A stretch of DNA of 61,970 bases, the filler included, from Choristocarpus tenellus KU-1152 (taxonomy: Eukaryota; Protista; Phaeophyceae): assembly GCA_964200185.2 (NCBI GenBank). It is 9 parts of 9 records of this genome, joined end to end, with 100 filler letters (N's around TTAATTAATTAA, not from the genome) between each part and the next. Parts side by side here need not be neighbours in the genome. Positions count along the whole stretch, not along the records: positions 45,409 to 52,688 come from CAXNAD020006415.1; 8 more parts are not named here. One strand, written 5' to 3'. Position 1 is the first letter of the stretch. Each line of letters opens with the position of its first letter. The translations under genes and the position numbers were made by a program. Under the pieces are notes generated by a model, which saw only the letters and a program-made list of their open reading frames with translations, was not told where the DNA came from and made no database searches. Shown piece by piece: positions 2,421 to 52,788 of this stretch.

Positions 2421-3599
2421 CTTCACAGTCCCCTCTCCCACTATTTTGCTTCTATTCAGTGTTGATGAATTTGGTTGAGGTCCTTTTCGTTGGTTCCTTA
2501 TTCTTGACAATCCAAACTCTCTAGTTTCTGCTTGTCTCTGCTGGAATTGCCAAGGGATCACAAACAAGTTCATCAATCAGAGGACAAGTTCTGCCCTGTT
2601 GCTCCCATGTTGTCAAACAAATGGTGATGAGGGAGAGGGATATCTTTCTCCTTTTGTTGGTGGACCGGTCCATCTGGAGCCATCAATAGGGACCCAAACA
2701 GTACTGGATACATCTCTAAGGTCTCTAGCTGGAAGGAACAAAGCTCAAGAACCTACTGGAGATGTATATATCAATTACCTTCAAGTGCTCCATAATATAT
2801 TCGTATACATAGATGATGTCAACTGGAATACATGTGGGTGTCGTAGAGGAAGTAGTGTAAATGTTGTTATTGCGCAATATAATGCCAATAAATAGAGGCG
2901 GAGGAGATGCTATGTTGCCAATGTTTTGCAGGGATGAGTACCAAGACTCGACAAGAGAGGTGCATATTGTGGAACATGTTTGACCCCGTTCTCCTAATCA
3001 CCCTCCCACCCCCTGGAATAGTAGATAAGGCGTTCAAACGTAGGAGGAGATATGATCACATCTTACTTTGAGGAGGATGTGGTGGTCATGTGTGGGTAAG
3101 CAACAAAAGCTATAAATCTGACTGTGAGCACAAATGGTGCTGTTGCCTTCTGACAAGCAGCTCAAGTTCTGGAGATGTCAGGGACATGAAAATTGGACTG
3201 CTCAGTGCAGGTTTCTGCGTGATTAGAAATAAAATGCATGATTGCAGCAAGTATAAGCTTTGCAAATGTTGATGCTAGTCGAAAGAGTTAGTAACGCACA
3301 AATTGGGTAGGCAAAGGTTGAGATCCTGTAGTTGCTCTAGCGACTAGCCCTTTTCAGTTTGTTAGAGTATTTCTCCATATGTCGCCAGCTAGTTTTGCAA
3401 GTCCTTTCTACTTGGTTTGTGAGTGTATGGAATCGGTGGAAGCTGGACTATGGCTTCTTGGGGAGGAATGATGGCTTCCGGATGACTGTCAGGTAGTTCT
3501 GGTGACAAGTATCTAGTTTTTGGGTTCGTAGATCGATAAGAATCTTGCCAGTAGAGGGGAAGAAATAATCTAACAATTCATTGATTAGACTGCTTAGAT

Positions 3600-4091
3600 G
3601 CCCAGCAAATAAGTGAGGACTAGGCTAGATGACAATTAGCAGATGTCCTGATTTTTGCAGAGGACTGCCAGCAATTTTTAAAAACATATCAAATAGATTT
3701 TTAGTACAAACTATGGGAAATGGATGCTTGCAAGGTTAGCAACACATCGCTTTTTTGGGGGTTATGCAAATTATATACCATGAGTGGACAGGCAGGATTC
3801 CAATCAGAAAACTGCATGTTGAAGCCATAGGTTCATTCAGCTTTTGGGTTATTAGGTGTGAGATATTTGGGTCTTAATCAAGAACTACTTCATTGGAGTG
3901 TATGTCGCATGTTCAGGAGAACATATTATGTTGTAACAGGTGCACTGGTCGGGATTGCTCTAAGACAAAACCGGATGTGTATACAAAGATTGGCGGGCTG
4001 GATTATATATCAAGGTGAGGGGTGGGATTTAAAGTTAAATATGCATATCCAGTTGGGGTTGACTGCGCCCAAAGAAGTCTGCAGGGGCTAG
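3600..4091 (+). pseudogene. Degenerate LINE RT fragment
   Basis: SGQAGFQ...VCRMFRRTYYVV resembles QAGFR...F.DF.KAYD.V; many stops. Confidence 0.35.
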
Positions 4092-6179
4092 AGGAGCACT
4101 ACAACAGTAGTCATTTGAGGCCTGTCATGATGAACACGTGAAGGGGTGGTCACAGGATTGATATAATAGTGTTTGTAAGCAGAAGGCACGCCTAGTCTGG
4201 GTAAATGCAGATGCAAAGCCATAGAGGATGGGATGGGAAAGTATCGCATGTTGAAATGCTCATACGCTCCACACCATACAAACATTCCTCAAATCGAGTC
4301 TTGTCGTTTTCTTCAGCACCAAGTCAACACCCTCTGCGTGCAACATGGGCCTGGCCAAGTTCCACCATGCCAAAGCCTCCCTGCCCGATGTACCCCAAGA
4401 AGTCCTGGTCATTATGACTGTTGAACACCCCGAACTTCTTGACTCCAGGGTGCACTATTGTGCGGGTGTGAAGTATTGCAGTGAGTGAGTGAGGGTAATG
4501 CTCCCTCCAACAAGCCCACACTGGTACCAGTCGTAATGTTCAGATGCTGTGTTCGAATGAGGGTACCGCTGATGAGGACACAGGGCATAATGAGGGTGTA
4601 TCCCTTGCAAGAGAAGCTCGACTCCCTAAGACCAATACCAGGAAAATATTAAACTTGAGGGCCTTGAAAAAAAACGAAACTCCACAAGCACAGCGAGTCA
4701 GTACGATGGGGGAAGGAAACATCCTTGGAAGGTGAGTTGTATTTACGTTTGAGTGAAATCCCTCGTACAGTAAGGTAAAAATGGTTGTCCGCAGGTTTTG
4801 GATTTCTGGCATGGGTAGGAAGTGGTTGGTGGCTGCCTTACTGCAATGTGGCGAATAGTTGGGTCTTCACTATTGAGGGGAAACGTCGATCGAGTATGGG
4901 GCAGTGTATACGCAGACTCCATAGAATCGCCACGACAGCTTGGCCACAGAATCTACTTATCCACTCGACGAATCCACCAAAAGTATCCACCTTGGAATAG
5001 GTAGCACACATCCTCGCCTGGAGCAAGTCGAAGAGCAATCGCTCAGAGCGCTACCAAACAAGGGGCACAAGAAGGAGTACACCGACCTCTTGCAGCAGCA
5101 GCAATGAGTATTAGCCCCGTGCTCACCGATGGATGTAAAGAAACAATGCTGCACAACTCAGGCAGTCAATATTTCTAAGGGATGAAAGTAGGGAATACGT
5201 GAACAACCATGGCTACATTGCTGTACTGCCATGTCCTGTACCCTTGCCTGGTGTGGAAGGTCAACTGGTAGTCTCGAGAGTGCTGTGTGGAAAGACCTTT
5301 AGAAGGTGATGAAATTATCAACCGCATCCATACGTGTCATCCGCTCAAACACCATAACAATGCTGTCAAAAATACGACCTGGAGGTCTGCTCTTTCAGGT
5401 GTGATGCGTTGAGGTACAAGATATAGATGTTGCAGTTCTAAGTGTTCTTCTGGACGGCCTCAAAATGGCGATCAACAGGTAGGCTTGGACATGACTTAGG
5501 TGTCCTCAATTTCTAGGCTGAAGTCGGGGGTGATTGAAATACGGCACAGTCAGTGTGTTTGGTTTCACTCACGAAACTCCCAGGCAACCATACTGTCAAT
5601 ACTACATAGAAGGGGAACAGAGTTCTGGGGCTCCAATCAATGAAGTCTGATGCGGGTCCCATCTCCTAATCAGCTGAGGCGGCCTCTTGCGTTGTTCGTC
5701 ACCACCCTGCGTACGTCTTGCTATAGCATATAGTAGTCAAACTTGATCATCCTTGCAGCACGGTATGGATCGCCATTCCAGATGGAGAACAAACAATAAA
5801 ACGAAGCCTACTTCAATGGAGGACAAGACACAAGACCCTACATCGCCCAAAACTATGGCGAGTTTGAAATCGGGGACTAGCGATGGATTGGGTTAATGTA
5901 CTGGGATCCTCTACTCTAATGTTGGCGGCGCAACCTGGGCCTCTGGCAGCTTCTACCCGCGCAATTGATAGAGACAATGAACGGTTAATTTGCCTCCCAT
6001 AAGAAAGTAAGTGGCATGCATAGGTTACTCGAGGGTGATGATCGTTGCACTCACTTCGCTCTCTATCCAGGGCCTCCTGCTGGGGAATTCATGCCTTCTA
6101 CTCTGAAGTCCTTTCGCTCTTTACTTCCTCGTGTTCGTGGATCCTTGTGAGCAAATATGGTCACAGCGAAACTTTGAGT

Positions 6180-45408: not shown

Positions 45409-45900
45409 GGATACGCCTGCACCAACTATGCAAGGGGATGGGCATCCCTTGCACTATGGAGGACGGTAGCCCTTTCACAGTGGACAGGAATCTCTGCATG
45501 GATCTGGTGTTCCACGCAGGGGCACTAGCGGACACTGGAACAAACCCCTACAGGGACAAAGGCCTTCTGCTAGATGTCACCTTCGCAGAGGTACAGGCAA
45601 CCTCCCACCTTTCCCACTCATCTACCAGTAATGATGTAACTGCTGCTGCAGCCAAGGCGCAAAAGCGCACCCACTACGAGGGCTCCTTTGATCGTTGTAA
45701 TTATAACCTCAACACCTTCACGGTGGAAAGTTTTGGGGGCCTCAGCAAGCAAGCGGAATGCTTCCTGGACGAGCTGCCTACTCATATGGTAGGGGGGAGA
45801 GGAGCAGGAGGATATACCAGGAAAGGAGTAGTTAAATCCTGACTGCGCCAAATTGTCTCGGTTACTATGTAAGTGGCACTGTCTACACGTACGTGTCATG
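45409..45900 (+). pseudogene. Restriction-like endonuclease (RLE) C-terminus of a non-LTR retrotransposon
   Basis: MDLV...LLLDVT...AAAAK..KRTHY...FTVESFGGLSKQA..FL..L...LRQIVSV fits the PD-D/ExK RLE pattern; in-frame stops near the end. Confidence 0.85.
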
Positions 45901-46119
45901 CATTTTAAGCTAGAATCACAAGGGAGATGGAGACGGAGAGGTTTATTATCGATTCTTGGAATACTTCCCTAGCTCCTCCCGGGGCACAGATATAGGTAGA
46001 TTGGAGACACAGACAGGAGGGCAGTAGTACAACATAGATAGTGGTGGGGTAACCAATGGATTAGGGTTTTCCACATTAATGACATATTATTTCTTTAGGG
46101 CTTATATTGACGATGAAAC

Positions 46120-46325
46120 ACAACTGGTTTTCCCCCTGACACATCTGGAAAATGTCTTAAGGCATAATAATATAACTATTCGAAAGGATACCCTGACACA
46201 CCTCCAAAATGTCAAAGGGCATAATAATAATATAATACATTTCATTAGTTTTTCCCGTGGTATATCTGTAAAATGTTAAAGGGCAAAATAATAAAATATT
46301 CGGAGGGATAGGTTTTCCATATCTT
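46120..46325 (+). repeat. Three degenerate ~60-bp units; a related unit is at 61040-61135
   Basis: ccctgacacatctg.aa.atgtc..a.ggcataataata occurs at both loci. Confidence 0.7.
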
Positions 46326-48383
46326 CCCGTAACGTCTCTTTATGAGTACGTTTGCCGAACGCGGATCTCCAATCTCTATCGGGATCGTGATCGTCCCCAT
46401 GTGCTCTGTACTCCAGTTTTTCCTCCAAGTCCTTTCAGTCTTGCATTTGTCCGACCATAACCTCCTCCTCTAGGTTACGGTTCGTGTTAGTCCGTTTGTT
46501 TGGTCCGTCTTACCTGGTGATCCTCTTCACCACCCTTCCCTGAGTAAACCACACTGTCAAAGAATCATACCATTCGAGTAAATTTCGAATAAAAAAATCA
46601 GAGAGTGCGAACTATATTTTGCAACGAGATATTTTAGTAATTTTAATAAAATACCTTCTTCTGTTGTAATATACTCCCAAGTATATTTTGTGTCTCAGTT
46701 CAAGTCATGGATAACCTCAACAACTCGTCGTCACGCCAAAACATCTCTATGGATTGTTGTTACACCATGACTAGTTGTATCACCTCTTTCCTGCCTCGGT
46801 TCTCGCATGTTGTCTCGCAAGTTGGGTTCAGCACTCCGTCACCCCTAACTCAATCTCCTTTTTCGAATCTTCTGGTGGACCGAATCTTTACATTTTCCAT
46901 CTTGATCTTGGCACGTAGTTTATTTTGCGGTAGAATAGAGAAAGGATAGTAGTCAGATATACGATCCGTTGTGCTTGTTGTTGAGCTTTTCACCACCAAG
47001 GGATAAGGACGCTCATATGGTTAGGGTTATATGGCGACACAGTAGTATAATTAGTAGTATCATATTAGCATTAAGTGGTGGTGGTGATAGTAGTAGTAAT
47101 CATTCATACTTTTTGGTCATCTTTTGTCTGGAACTTCTCCATCAAACGCCCGACCTACCTGCACAGACAACTGGGCTATTTTTTCTCCCATACCCTCTAC
47201 CTGTTGCACCAAACTAATTGGGGTACACGTGCGTACCTTCATTTTTTCTCTTTTTGTTCATTAAACAAAACCAAATTTCCTGCGAAGAAAATCTGGTCTT
47301 TGTAGGTGGTGGTCAAAAACCCCACTCGTTTCACAGAGTAATGTGAAAAACACCATGCATAGAAAAAATAGTAGTAAGTGAGAACATACAATCTACCTTG
47401 AACATTAAAAAGAAATATATTTGAGGAACATGAACAAGTAAGAGAATCAGTGGAATTGCATCCACATAAACCTCTAATTTAATGCGCAACAAATGTCACA
47501 TGTGACATCAAACGAGGTAGGGAAGGTGTTGGAGATACAGATTATTCTACAACTATACTTGAAATTGTGCGTCATCATTCGAATCGGTTCTTTAAATATT
47601 GAAGCATTAGTGATGTATCATCCATGTACTACGCCTTAGAAAAATTCTCTCTCAAGAACCAAAACGATAAATGAAGAGTTTGAAAATTCGAACTCTTATC
47701 AAACATATTGTTTATATATAGAGTATATAGTTTTGAGTAGAATGAAATTGAGGATCTTCCAATTTTTGGGGGATTTGGTTTTGCTGTTCCAACAGCTTCT
47801 TTATCTACATGCTATATCAAAGAAGTGTGAAATGTGTAGGTAAGTGTATTGGTAAGACATTTCATAGTTGATAACTGGTACTTTTTCACCAACATTTCAA
47901 GATATGGATCTTGAAGATATTTCATCTATAATCAATCCTACATGTCTGAAACTACAGGGTACAGTGGACGAATAAGAAAGGGGGTCGAAAGATCTATTCT
48001 GAATCGTTTCACCTCTAGAAACAACCTGAATTAAATATGTGAATGCGAAGTAATATAATTTGCCTCGTTAGGTTTCATTGTCTTTTATAGTAAAAGGGAG
48101 ATGTTGTCCAGGGTTACATTCAGAAAAATAGAAACATTTCTGATTGCTGGAAGGGCATTTGTGGGAGAATAGTCTGGCGAAGAATTGGTACTTGTTGCAA
48201 CTCATCGATTATGGTGAGGATGATGCGCATGATACTCAACGTTTGAGGGGTTCAACCTTCTTTATGGATATTGGTATCGGTGTAAATAGGTACATTGGTA
48301 AGGAGCGCATATCATTTTGGGGAAGTTATTGACGCCAACAAACGAGTTAGGAACTTGAGCCTACGACGAAATCTCTGTTCCAG

Positions 48384-51300
48384 ATGAACTCGTTCTTACC
48401 TTGTCAAGACAGGGACCTTCGCAGCAGGTCACGAATTGATTGCCACAGAGATGCTATTCCGAATGGACCCGTGCGCAATGGTTTGCACGGAAGGGGTTTT
48501 TCCAACCTGCCTCAGTCAGAACCTCAGGAACAACGGGGAGAGTGTCCGACGCTTCCCTCGAAGAACAAAAGGATCAAACTGATCGATGCGAGGTTCAGAG
48601 ATAAATTCTCGGACAAGAGTTGCGACGATAATGTGTCCTCTGGTTCTGCATCAACCACAGGAAATCATGAAGGATCCTCTCTTTGGCCTGGTGCCCGCTC
48701 GCCATCCGATGTGATACGAAATGACATCCGTGATACGAGTCCCACTCATCTGCGATCCTTAGGTTCTCAGGAAAAAGTGGGACGAACGATGCCGACTTCT
48801 GTGTCACTCCAAACCAGTTCTGAGATACTGATGCAGAGGGAGCTACCACAACCAAGGTTACCCTCACCACCTGACATCCTGCAAGAAGGGCAGCATACGT
48901 CTAGGTCTGCCTTGGAAGAATGCACGGCAGAGGATGATCAATCTGTAGACATGGAGAAGTTAAGACGCCCCAAGTGTGGGGAGACAACTTGCTCTGCAAT
49001 ACACGCTGCACAGAACAATGGACCATCAGGACTTAAGTGTGCATTGAATGCAGCATGTTGGTTCTTCAAGACAGTGACAACCCAGGTGATTTCAACTACA
49101 GCAATAGCAGTTTACAACATTTGGTGATGTAATTAATAAATTGGACGGTTATCTTTTGTTTAAATCTTGTAGAAAATCACCAGCTTGTCCTTGGCTACAA
49201 CACACTCGTTCTGAATTGAGACTCTGCAGACTAGAGATCGCTCTACTACACTACTCCCATGGAGTTTTCCTGCATCATATAACTACGTGTTCCAACCATG
49301 CTTTGTAGCTAGGTTACCAAACTTGTGCCGCCGTTATTGAGTTCCAGTTCACAATTATTTTACTGTATTTGCGCTTCATATTTTGAAATGTCAAGTGAAA
49401 ATACTGTCATCCTGAGAAAATGTCGCATATCCTTATGACTAAGAACTGAGATGAGGGATGGTAGAATAATGTATCCGTTCGCATCTTGCCTAGCAGTCTA
49501 CATTTGAGTGCCTGGGTCTCAGTGTGAATAGCAGCATTAGTGAGAAGGCACACGGGTTCTCACTTTTTCCCATGTTCCTAATTTGGCTGTTGCCTCTCTG
49601 CACCTTGCATGTAAGGTGGTTGCAATCGAGGCTAACTCCCTACCATCAGTATTCAAGGAGGTCCCTAAACTTCGAGAAGTGTGCCTGAAGTGGGCATCTG
49701 TCCCGTTTTGCTTAGCTATGGGCTTTGGCAACATGAACCACTTCGAGGTGGGCACTGTGCTTGAAGCATTTGCTCGAGGCTATAACACCCCTTCACTGGG
49801 CGATGCATACAAGGAGGGCACCTATGTCAAGGGTGTAACAGTTGTTAACTATGTAGGATCCCTGCTGACATACCGAGCAAACGAATTTTTGGCATGCAAT
49901 GATCTTACAGATGCTGAAATAGAGAGCGCCCACAAAGGGAAAATGTGGAAAACAAAGAGCGCCTCTCACCCACCTCTCTACAGAGTGTGGGAAGCATTGG
50001 ATGCCCGGGTTGAACAACGTGAGCAGAAAGAAGGCTTAGCTCGGGATAAGGCACAGTGGAAAGCTCATTCCATCTCTATCAATGAGTTTAATATGGTGAA
50101 GGAACGCACAGACCAGTGCATGGTAGAAGCCAGACGAGACGATGATCCGTACCGCTATGCCAAGCATGCTATTGCTGGTGCCGCCCAGGAGATCCTTCAC
50201 CTTGGTGGATGTAGAGCCATGAGTGATCTCGCGAACATCAAATTCTCTGATTTCAAGGTTCAGGAGGACGGGAGTTACTTCTACAGGAATCGCTTCGTGA
50301 GTGTTTGGAGCTCCGTGTTCTATGAGACAGCTGTTGCTGAAAGCATGCATGATTCGTGTACATTGAGTAAACACTGATTAGAGTTTACGTGTATTCCATG
50401 TTTTTTTGCTCAAACAATTCCAGAATCGTATGGTATTCTTTGAATTGTAACATTGTCACATGATTGTATCTGCTCTTGCACAATGCAGTGGTATTTTATT
50501 TTCTTATGTATGTATCATTTGTTTAGACATGCACGTCACATTTTTTCTTTTTCAACTTGACCACTCTCCCTCATCTCACATGTGCTGCTTACATCTTTTC
50601 CGAAAAACATACCCCAAAGTGTCATTCCTATTCCTTCACCACCTTCAGAAGTACAAATTGGTGTTTTTTATTCAGTATTCTAGTCCACCCTCTCCTTGTT
50701 GTTCCATTGTCCCCATCCCCTTGATTTTCCAGGGTGAGGAGTTCTGTGAGCTAACTCCAACATACCACATGAAGCATCCACCTGAGCAGGGCATCTACAG
50801 AAGGGGGTACCCAAGGGAGCCACAGCCTCGAAATATCGCTTCGCGGAGGTTCAAGGAATTGTTCCTTCTCCTCAAAGCCCACCGCCCCCACAATGCTCAA
50901 GACCGTTTCTTCCTCCAGCCTTCCAGGGACCGTAACATTACGTTCATGGCTGACTCTCCCCCCTGGTTCACAACACAGCCAGTGGGAAGAAATTCCGAAT
51001 ACATAAAGTGCATCGTCGGTTACGCTCGGGACCTGGGACTCTCCAACCACCTCACGAATACCTCAATCAGATCCCTAGTGCAAATGCAGCTTGCACTTGC
51101 CAATGTGCCTATGACTGTGATTACAATCGTTGTGGGACACATGTCAGGCAAAAAAGGAAGTGTGCATCCCTCAGCTGAGAGGCGTCTTGGTGCCACTGCG
51201 AAGAACATGGTACTCTATGTTGAGGGGATGCGCAGCCAGCCAGTAAGGGAGCTTGTGGCTGTGATTCTTGATGGGCGTGGGACATGGGACAGTCTCAAAG

Positions 51301-51989
51301 GTGACAAGAGGATCATGGGCAGTGAAGCGATCGATTCTACCGGTACTGCTGGCATCTCCACCAACCCTTCTCCGTCTGCATACTCCACTGCTATGGGTGT
51401 ACCCTCATGCACTGCTTCTGTCTCCCCTCAACCACATTGGCCACAGAATTTGCGTGTTGCACATCATAGTATGCCACAGCTCAGCAACTTGACCAACTAT
51501 GACCCTGGCATTCCTCCTTCTGTATCCCAGCCATATTGTGTGCCATATGCCAGGATGACCCGGCTTCCGCCTGGTGTCTTTGGCACCCCTTACAGCTATG
51601 GTCCTGCCACAAGTGCATCACAATCTTCTCCCATTGTGGCCCCTGAAAATTGGCTGCAAATTGCGAGCTCATCCAACCCCGACCAACTTGTAGGAAGCTT
51701 CCCCCAGTCGCCTGGATGGCACGGTGCAGAGGCAGGACCTTCTAGTGTCAGACCTGGCCGTGCGCTCTCACCACCCTACGCAATGAGATCGGTTGCAAGC
51801 CAGTATCGGGGGGGGGGCGTGGCATCAACACCTCGTTTGGCAAGCATTCAAACTCCTCCCAAAGCGCCTGGATTAGACAGGGTTGAAGCAGGTGGTGTTG
51901 ACCAGGCCCCATCTTGTGGGGGGTGTGGTACACCCTTTTTTAGTTTTCCTAATGTATACTTTTGCATGGTCTGTGGGAGGAAGCGATAG
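48384..51989 (+). CDS. Crypton/DUF3504-type tyrosine recombinase with C-terminal zinc ribbon; predicted exons 48384-49085, 49616-50296, 50733-51989 (879 aa if all are joined)
   Basis: Motifs in order: ALDARV..G..KAHSIS..E, GGCRAMSDLANIKFSDF, HMK, RFFLQP, WFTTQPVGRN, LTNTSIRS, VVGHMS, VLY, CGGC..CMVCG. Intron 50297-50732 (GTGAGT..TTCCAG) is phase 0. Linkage of the first exon is less certain. Confidence 0.82.
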
Positions 51990-52788
51990 GCAGAATTAGT
52001 ACGTAAATATCAGCAGAGAGTACCATTCCATACCTGTCTCACAGTGTCCCTGTCTATGAACAGTTTGAGTGGGTGGACTTTTTGAAATATGCCACTTACG
52101 TCTCCTCTCGGAACCCTGACTTGTAACTTTATAGTAGCTGATTTGAGGAGACTGGGACACAGTGTCTGATAGAGGTAAATGCATGTGTTGTGTCTGTAGA
52201 GGATGAAATTAAACGGAGTCTTTACTTGTTGCAATACCTCAATATATAGCATTTTGTACTTCAACGCCACCACAGCTTGTGGTTCATTGTAGTAGTTGTA
52301 GGCAATTTACGTATTTACAATGTGTGTGTTCTTTCATGTTGTAAATCCTCTTGTTATTGTCCACGCTGTGCTGTGTGTGTTTTTTTGTGCTTTTGACATG
52401 GTGGCTCATGAAGACATGTAGCAGTTTTGTTATTGATGGTAGCTACTTGGACTCCCCTTGAACTTATTGATTAGAATAATTATAGGTTAGGGCGTGCCAT
52501 CAATAAATATGTAGATAATAATTATTAACCATTAATTCTTTCGAATTGCGTACTTGATAGTATATAAAACAAACTCTTTCTGTACATAATTTCAGCTCTT
52601 CACAGGTCGTAAGATAATTTATCTGTCTGCAATGCTTGATGGTTCATTTTCAGCATCTGGGTCAAAGTATCTTGGGGGGGGGTATCGGNNNNNNNNNNNN
52701 NNNNNNNNNNNNNNNNNNNNNNNNNNNNNNNNTTAATTAATTAANNNNNNNNNNNNNNNNNNNNNNNNNNNNNNNNNNNNNNNNNNNN

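Follow-up and report, generated by a model that had tools for sequence, protein, structure and literature searches.

The locus described here lies in a 61,970-nt window, a stretch of nine joined genomic parts (filler included) from the brown alga Choristocarpus tenellus (Stramenopiles; Ochrophyta; Phaeophyceae; assembly GCA_964200185.2). The relevant part is one complete public contig, CAXNAD020006415.1 (7,280 nt, positions 45409-52688; positions without a contig name are those of the window). The contig is not human, and the preliminary description of this DNA was right in taking the genome for a probable ochrophyte. A single gene is called on the contig. It occupies 48384-51989 on the + strand, exactly the interval singled out for study, and its 879-amino-acid (aa) product CAM9587605.1 (here P0001) carries the public label 'unnamed protein product [Choristocarpus tenellus]'. 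The locus is, with high confidence, a genuine spliced gene for a divergent tyrosine-recombinase-like protein of the Crypton/DUF3504 lineage.

Three long consecutive open reading frames (ORFs) were found on the + strand (48384-49127, 49583-50377 and 50460-51989), and the gene consists of three exons and two GT..AG introns (Table 1). The second and third ORFs had been proposed to join in phase across a canonical intron. This join was confirmed and agrees with CAM9587605.1, and the claim of an intact spliced gene was likewise borne out by the public 879-aa model. A further intron upstream, which the preliminary description did not contain, completes the model from the ATG at 48384. Exons were searched separately. 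Full-length P0001 was taken from the public record, which was retrieved by an all-against-all HMMER search queried with exon 3 residues 1-190, and its identity was verified exon by exon; the three exon translations reproduce the protein without gaps. The Phaeoexplorer annotation is evidence-based, with transcript and protein alignments merged by Gmove (10.1101/2024.02.19.579948). Since no protein homologue could have guided the P0001 model, transcript support for it is likely.

Homology was assessed by profile and pairwise searches. The Pfam profile DUF3504 (PF12012, gathering threshold 29.7 bits) gave sub-threshold matches only: 15.1 bits for exon 3 (residues 43-88, E-value 0.025), 14.1 bits for P0001 and 13.9 bits for its paralog P0002. 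The exon 3 match falls exactly on the FFLQP / PWF..QPVG.N stretch, the very motifs that had been said to look DUF3504-like. Phage_integrase (PF00589) was not matched directly by P0001 even at E-values up to 1, a PHROGs search of the protein was negative, and exon-wise Pfam, PDB-sequence and word-index searches returned nothing besides the weak DUF3504 match. A phmmer search of 1.84e9 (1.84 billion) representative proteins yielded 11 matches, none of them to a protein labelled oomycete or diatom. Three of the weaker matches, P0003, P0009 and P0011 (E 1.7e-6 for P0003 to 1e-3), are recognised by Pfam both as DUF3504 (down to E 6.5e-32) and as Phage_integrase (down to E 1.9e-15). When the algal proteins and their two nearest relatives were compared by hhalign with a DUF3504/integrase profile, residues 503-601 were aligned with 98% probability (E 2.5e-13); a greedier run (E 1.2e-13) was colinear across 411 columns and covered the box-I arginine region and the N-terminal domain. 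A mixed profile (A7) matched the solved recombinases IntI4 (E 4.5e-4), a XerC-like protein, XerA and Tn1549 Int, and the box-I stretch was aligned with the G-L-R-V-S-E-L box of the XerC-like protein; a profile built from the clade only matched nothing in PDB. Language-model features of both recombinase exons led to the Phage_integrase, DUF3504, QRICH1 and Phage_int_SAM_1 clusters, those of exon 2 to the QRICH1/DUF3504 and Phage_int_SAM_1 clusters. The proposed assignment to a Crypton/DUF3504-type recombinase thus stands as kinship, but the protein itself remains below the Pfam DUF3504 cut-off.

By these comparisons, a central module of ~420 residues (about 235-655) is predicted to be a very divergent tyrosine recombinase of this lineage. 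It consists of a helical N-terminal domain of the DNA-binding type and a catalytic domain reaching to about aa 655. Long disordered tails flank the module (AlphaFold2 (AF2) predicted local distance difference test (pLDDT) <50 in the exon 1 region), of which the C-terminal one is Pro/Ser/Gly-rich.

The active site was read from the alignments. P0001 contains G-G-C-R434-A-M-S-D-L as box I, the hairpin lysine K475, N-T571-S-I-R574 as box II, then G-H597 and finally N-M-V-L-Y623. Of the active-site set R-K-H-R-H/W-Y, candidates for five of six residues are therefore retained (R434, K475, R574, H597 and Y623). T571 aligns with the HxxR histidine in the profile alignment to IntI4, XerC-like and XerA, so that the R-H-R-Y tetrad reads R-T-R-Y. 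The 'full tyrosine recombinase motif series' of the preliminary description was consequently not upheld: the HxxR histidine is replaced, and the tyrosine follows H597 only after 26 residues, compared with a His-to-Tyr distance of ~10 residues in DUF3504/integrase relatives. P0001 hence lacks the complete hallmark tetrad; nor are its catalytic residues lost as in domesticated genes, only the box-II histidine being gone. The His-to-Thr change is common to all clade members (6/6), and a single tyrosine is conserved throughout the six, 20-27 residues past the G-H histidine. Arg, Arg, His-III and Tyr are kept across these six sequences at 22-36% identity. Judging from His mutants of other tyrosine recombinases, loss of the box-II histidine would probably slow DNA cleavage and rejoining by P0001 rather than abolish it. 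Judged by their sequences, the six proteins form a small, unnamed putative clade, in which N-T-S-x-R replaces N-H-S-x-R and 20-27 residues separate G-H from Tyr.

Table 1. Features of the recombinase-like gene on CAXNAD020006415.1 (window positions).
Feature	Position	Strand	Description
Exon 1	48384..49085	+	aa 1-234; low-complexity, probably disordered N-terminal region; translation identical to P0001
Intron 1	49086..49615	+	530 nt, GT..AG, phase 0; upstream join
Exon 2	49616..50296	+	aa 235-461; helical N-terminal core-binding-like domain and start of catalytic domain, including box-I Arg434
Box-I Arg434 codon	50213..50215		
Intron 2	50297..50732	+	436 nt, GT..AG, phase 0; pyrimidine-rich 3' end
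Exon 3	50733..51989	+	aa 462-879 (50733-51986) and TAG; rest of catalytic domain, tail, zinc ribbon
Candidate catalytic Lys475	50772..50774	+	beta-hairpin region; aligns with K conserved in all full-length family members; inferred assignment
Best-supported homology block	50856..51152	+	aa 503-601; FFLQP, PWF..QPVG.N, N-T-S-x-R box, G-H
T571 codon	51060..51062		position of the HxxR histidine
R574 codon	51069..51071		
H597 codon	51138..51140		
Candidate nucleophile Tyr623	51216..51218	+	N-x-x-x-Y; 26 residues past H597; invariant in 6/6 clade members
Zinc-ribbon-like motif	51915..51974	+	CxxC-x12-CxxC, C856..C875, P0001 C-terminus; weak Pfam match Auto_anti-p27, E 0.2

The only close relative among 5.8e9 and 1.84e9 proteins is P0002 (CAM9620771.1, 837 aa), which is encoded by the same alga on another short contig (L001, 6,862 nt). 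P0001 and P0002 were the only proteins with E <1e-10 in phmmer, both from Choristocarpus. The overall identity of the two is 47-49%; it amounts to 45-49% for the core and drops to 27% for the tails. The last ~50 aa of exon 1 are conserved as well (P0001 aa 187-273 versus L001 1760-2050, 32% identity, E 1.9e-6), and the P0002 C-terminus carries the same kind of cysteine motif (CxxC-x15-CxxC). Both P0002 introns, L001 1898-2153 (256 nt, after ..VVDQ) and L001 2820-3025 (206 nt), occupy exactly homologous positions and show no sequence similarity to the introns of the P0001 gene. Synonymous divergence (dS) between the paralogs is saturated (>2.5 or undefined); nonsynonymous divergence (dN) amounts to 0.44-0.50 for the domain, as against about 1.0 for the tails, and the recombinase domain of the pair is apparently under long-term constraint. 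Each paralog is the sole member of its 90% cluster. No protein fragments of 131-731 aa were found, annotated proteins of 131-1538 aa included no further copy of either family, and an exact look-up of the 509-aa ORF of exon 3 gave no match.

For the DNA context, 2.9 kb upstream and 0.7 kb downstream of the gene are visible. Both algal contigs are free of tRNA and Rfam families, and CAXNAD020006415.1 contains no detected tandem repeats. Neither algal contig carries a reverse transcriptase/RNase H gene or any other Pfam-recognisable gene, and neither algal gene is flanked by inverted repeats or a palindrome. Neither terminal direct nor terminal inverted repeats were found in the visible flanks of the gene, nor termini shared with the paralog contig. 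A 21-nt direct repeat brackets the gene, with one copy 175 nt ahead of the ATG (48189-48209) and the other 234 nt beyond the stop (52223-52243). The copies agree at 81% of positions, including all of the first 12 nt. As a terminal repeat it was rejected and judged a chance match: a 7.3-kb sequence should contain ~1-2 exact 12-mers by chance alone, and the paralog contig does not have the motif. Upstream of the gene, an AT-rich region contains a 39-nt unit in three copies (46134-46293; 74-100% identical, 57-64 nt apart).

Outside the recombinase coding sequence, only two stretches are common to both contigs, namely a repeat at their starts and 24 nt at their extreme ends. The start repeat (45438-45659 versus L001 223-1, opposite strand) is 86.5% identical over 223 nt. 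A 134-aa ORF (45438-45842, +), open to the contig edge (from 45411) and not annotated as a gene, overlies it. Pfam, PDB and IMG/VR searches found no match for this ORF, and both contigs probably broke in a high-copy repeat of which it is a fragment. Its pattern D-V-T...E...K..x.H-Y is reminiscent of restriction-like endonuclease motifs. The 24 nt at the ends (GGGTCrAAGTATCTTGGGGG..., 22/24 identical; 52655-52678 and L001 6839-6862) are followed in the window by a run of nine G, and are either another repeat common to the two contigs or a point where the assembly broke. Both shared stretches are best read as unrelated high-copy repeats at assembly breaks, since the copies of the start repeat diverged far more recently than the recombinase paralogs and its orientation differs between the contigs.

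A remnant, devoid of reverse transcriptase, of a DIRS/Ngaro/PAT tyrosine-recombinase retrotransposon, the type of recombinase element abundant in brown algae, was considered in view of the ~3% of the Ectocarpus genome made up of Ngaro and PAT-like elements and of a curated Ectocarpus transposable element library that lists no Crypton (PMC12477816). Such an origin is highly improbable for P0001: there is no reverse transcriptase/RNase H ORF and no split or inverted terminal repeat on either contig, PF00589 is not matched, the nearest recognisable relatives are DUF3504-type, and HMMER returned no brown-algal Ngaro recombinases. A Ngaro/DIRS remnant was rejected for these reasons.

More distant relatives of the clade are 22-33% identical, keep the N-T-S-x-R box and are intronless ORFs on small contigs. 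They comprise P0004 (on L002, a Logan assembly) and, from JGI metagenomes, L004, L005, L006 and P0005 (on L003). They derive from freshwater metagenomes. A scan of JGI metagenomes for close relatives was negative.

Several of these compact members are associated with repeats. In L004, perfect 65-nt inverted repeats (89-153 and 1864-1928), 1,710 nt apart, enclose only the recombinase gene, a 443-aa ORF at 323-1654; the right arm reaches the contig end. Within each arm lies a smaller inverted pair, TGTTATCCC ... GGTATAACA, whose halves are about 12 nt apart, an arrangement that resembles a recombinase core site. By its arrangement, the L004 unit could be a small recombinase-only element bounded by terminal inverted repeats (TIRs) or a self-inverting cassette. 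L002 starts and ends with the inner ~10 nt of an inverted repeat of the L004 kind (TTTTTGAAAA / TTTTCAAAAA; L002 1-30 and 1700-1716; L004 144-175). Just inside the repeat, L002 and L004 still agree over the first ~30 nt (..TGAA..GTGGTATATTTT), and the remaining flank has diverged. In L005 (130-240) and L006 (178-282), a palindrome with arms of 54 and 51 nt, respectively, 85-86% complementary and with a 3-nt loop, is located just upstream of the P0005-type recombinase coding region and contains repeated GGTCGAGACC motifs. Because the palindrome overlaps the mechanically called ORF start, the true start of the L005/L006 recombinase is probably further downstream. At the other end of the protein, the extreme C-termini of P0005/L005 (..H-G-G-T-V-N-F-H-F..) resemble G-C-T-V-N/T-I-Y, the C-terminal motif of P0003 and P0009 (DUF3504/integrase proteins of animal type), in the last ~25 columns of A7. 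This motif may represent a second common module beyond the catalytic domain.

In L005, the GC content falls from 40-47% in the recombinase block to 24-27% in the adjoining block. Because this break is sharp, the recombinase block is suggested to be an insertion in an AT-rich genome or virus. The low-GC block (2751-4188, -) encodes a Lys-rich 188-aa ORF and an Asn-rich 272-aa ORF, both without a Pfam, PHROG, PDB or IMG/VR match. This junction with unannotated ORFs, together with the contig breaks in repeats that leave the algal neighbourhoods unseen, would fit a gene carried, as integrase or passenger, by a larger element extending beyond the 7.3-kb contig, such as an integrated virus, a polinton-like virus or a large recombinase-mobilised island. 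Brown algae indeed carry many integrated phaeoviruses with a tyrosine-recombinase integrase, but that integrase orthogroup spans brown-algal genomes (PMC13236599), whereas P0001 has a single relative at E <1e-10. IMG/VR scans detected no viral relative of the protein, of the ORF neighbouring the L005 recombinase or of the repeat ORF, and two spliceosomal introns conserved between old paralogs would be unusual for a viral integrase. A larger element is accordingly considered improbable. A phaeovirus integrase in particular was rejected: the orthogroup (PMC13236599) unites phaeoviruses with brown-algal viral insertions, whereas the only two proteins below E 1e-10 are both from Choristocarpus.

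The reading preferred here, at about even chances, is that the algal pair are host-resident derivatives of a mobile ancestor, immobilised or domesticated, and not a young autonomous transposon. This is based on the single-copy state at the protein level, the old paralogs with conserved introns, the added tails and zinc ribbon, the lack of DNA repeats like those of the compact relatives, and the His-to-Thr change. The algal proteins have some 450 additional residues and the zinc ribbon, which favours residence because domesticated DUF3504 proteins likewise have added domains. Both copies would descend from a mobile ancestor and would since have been immobilised or domesticated. With R, K, R, H and Y kept, P0001 would most likely still bind DNA as a recombinase-like clamp, and may still cleave and rejoin DNA through Tyr623.

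Several observations weigh against residence. Both paralogs are located on tiny contigs (~7 kb) that end in the same repeats and thus point to repeat-rich DNA. Copy counts are based on annotated proteins, so that unannotated copies or copies collapsed in the assembly are uncounted. No orthologue was found in another brown alga or stramenopile among 1.84e9 and 5.8e9 proteins, which weakens domestication because a domesticated gene is expected to be conserved across species. P0001 retains the tyrosine and second arginine that animal domesticated DUF3504 domains have lost (PMC3212892), and these residues fit continued catalysis and therefore mobility. Finally, AF2 models were too poor to confirm the fold structurally, as no deep alignment was available (pLDDT 40.6 for P0001 with 9 sequences and 48.5 for its relative P0004 with 11 sequences), and Foldseek with these models returned nothing at E up to 0.001. 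In VIA, the N-domain of P0004 ranked QRICH1 (9hjt_H, Z 7.4) first and the Cre N-domain (Z 6.6) third, both within helical-bundle noise; these modelled ranks are suggestive at most, and consistent with recombinase kinship.

By a competing explanation, P0001 would be the recombinase of a low-copy, still autonomous Crypton-like transposon that excises as a circle and reinserts via Tyr623; the paralog would then represent another old family of that superfamily within the genome. The clade conserves R, K, R, H and Y and is patchily distributed (one alga and freshwater organisms), the relatives reside in mobile-looking units (perfect 65-nt inverted repeats; a GC jump from ~42% to 25% in L005), and the algal gene lies on a short, repeat-bounded contig that encodes the recombinase alone, with no reverse transcriptase. 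Cryptons are moreover devoid of TIRs and can contain introns, and their ends are difficult to define (PMC3212892). Yet no second copy of either family was detected in the 131-1538 aa range of annotated proteins, terminal repeats and termini in common with the paralog contig are missing, the tetrad histidine is lost, and two single-copy families at saturated dS are hard to square with maintenance by transposition. Continued autonomy is therefore somewhat unlikely. Of the two alternatives offered in the preliminary description, the young autonomous Crypton found no backing, for want of further copies among the searched proteins, of terminal repeats or shared termini, and in view of the saturated dS; an independent domestication is mildly favoured, but orthologues in other algae, which would be its key proof, were not found.

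Host residence of the algal pair can be combined with the compact relatives in a broader scheme, which is tentative and, taken as a whole, rather unlikely. Here, the clade would be an undescribed group of eukaryotic tyrosine recombinases, and its compact intronless members would be small recombinase-only units of a new kind, mobile or self-inverting and distinct from the TIR-less Cryptons; such units could lie between perfect inverted repeats with 65-nt arms (about 1.8 kb) or be accompanied by a palindrome with ~54-nt arms. Choristocarpus, an early-diverging brown alga, would have captured and domesticated a member independently of animal ZMYM/QRICH1, with a gain of introns, disordered tails and the zinc ribbon and with a near-complete active site kept.

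The gene itself was already public but unnamed, and can now be assigned a family. New are the His-to-Thr box and the long His-to-Tyr linker, as well as the occurrence of repeat-bounded compact members versus intron-bearing algal genes; a new category is not implied. So far, Cryptons and the DUF3504 genes domesticated from them have been recorded in animals, fungi, oomycetes and a single diatom. The present locus extends this lineage to the Phaeophyceae, with copies that are intact, spliced and long diverged. Five of six active-site residues combined with the His-to-Thr change represent a state intermediate between active transposases and the DUF3504 domains of animals, which are catalytically dead. 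Should the pair turn out to be a host gene, a recombinase would have been domesticated independently in another multicellular lineage, which would provide a natural test of the need for catalysis. Should it be mobile, brown algae would have their first Crypton-type element: apart from two Crypton fragments (111 bp in total) in the RepeatMasker table of Saccharina sculpera (PMC12595068), no report of Cryptons in brown algae was found in the literature.

Among known systems, Cryptons comprise CryptonA/I of animals, CryptonS of oomycetes and diatoms, and CryptonF of fungi (Goodwin 2003; Kojima & Jurka 2011, PMC3212892). The algal gene shares with them a recombinase as the only coding capacity seen, the lack of reverse transcriptase, TIRs and long terminal repeats (LTRs), the tolerance of introns, a stramenopile host as in CryptonS, and sequence kinship to DUF3504/CryptonA-like recombinases. 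It differs in having Thr at the tetrad His position, 26 residues between G-H and Tyr, and a zinc ribbon instead of GCR1_C at its C-terminus; multiple copies (at the protein level), 5-6-bp terminal direct repeats and TATGG ends, as in Cryptons, were not shown for it. Flp/FRT of the yeast 2-micron plasmid resembles L004 only, in the recombinase gene inside long perfect inverted repeats with short inverted sub-sites. The distant relatives, and only these, also recall Flp in their longer-than-usual linker before the nucleophilic Tyr. A sequence relationship to Flp was not shown, and the algal loci have no inverted repeats.

Domesticated DUF3504 genes (ZMYM2-4, QRICH1, KIAA1958, KCTD1, WOC) are conserved across phyla and have lost Tyr and the second Arg (PMC3212892), whereas P0001 keeps Arg, Arg, His-III and Tyr, is without found orthologues and scores below the Pfam threshold. 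Common to both are a recombinase-derived module in a long protein with zinc-binding and disordered additions, the intron-bearing, low-copy gene, and PF12012, to which the weak Pfam match of P0001 belongs. Glomhopper, a DUF3504-encoding CryptonA subfamily of Glomeromycota, is comparable to the algal clade as a DUF3504-type group outside animals with both intron-containing and intronless forms, for which the same question of transposon or co-opted gene arises (PMC13465315). It is present in hundreds to thousands of copies with an intact catalytic set and no consistent intron positions (PMC13465315), whereas the Choristocarpus pair consists of two copies that combine the His-to-Thr change with identical intron positions.

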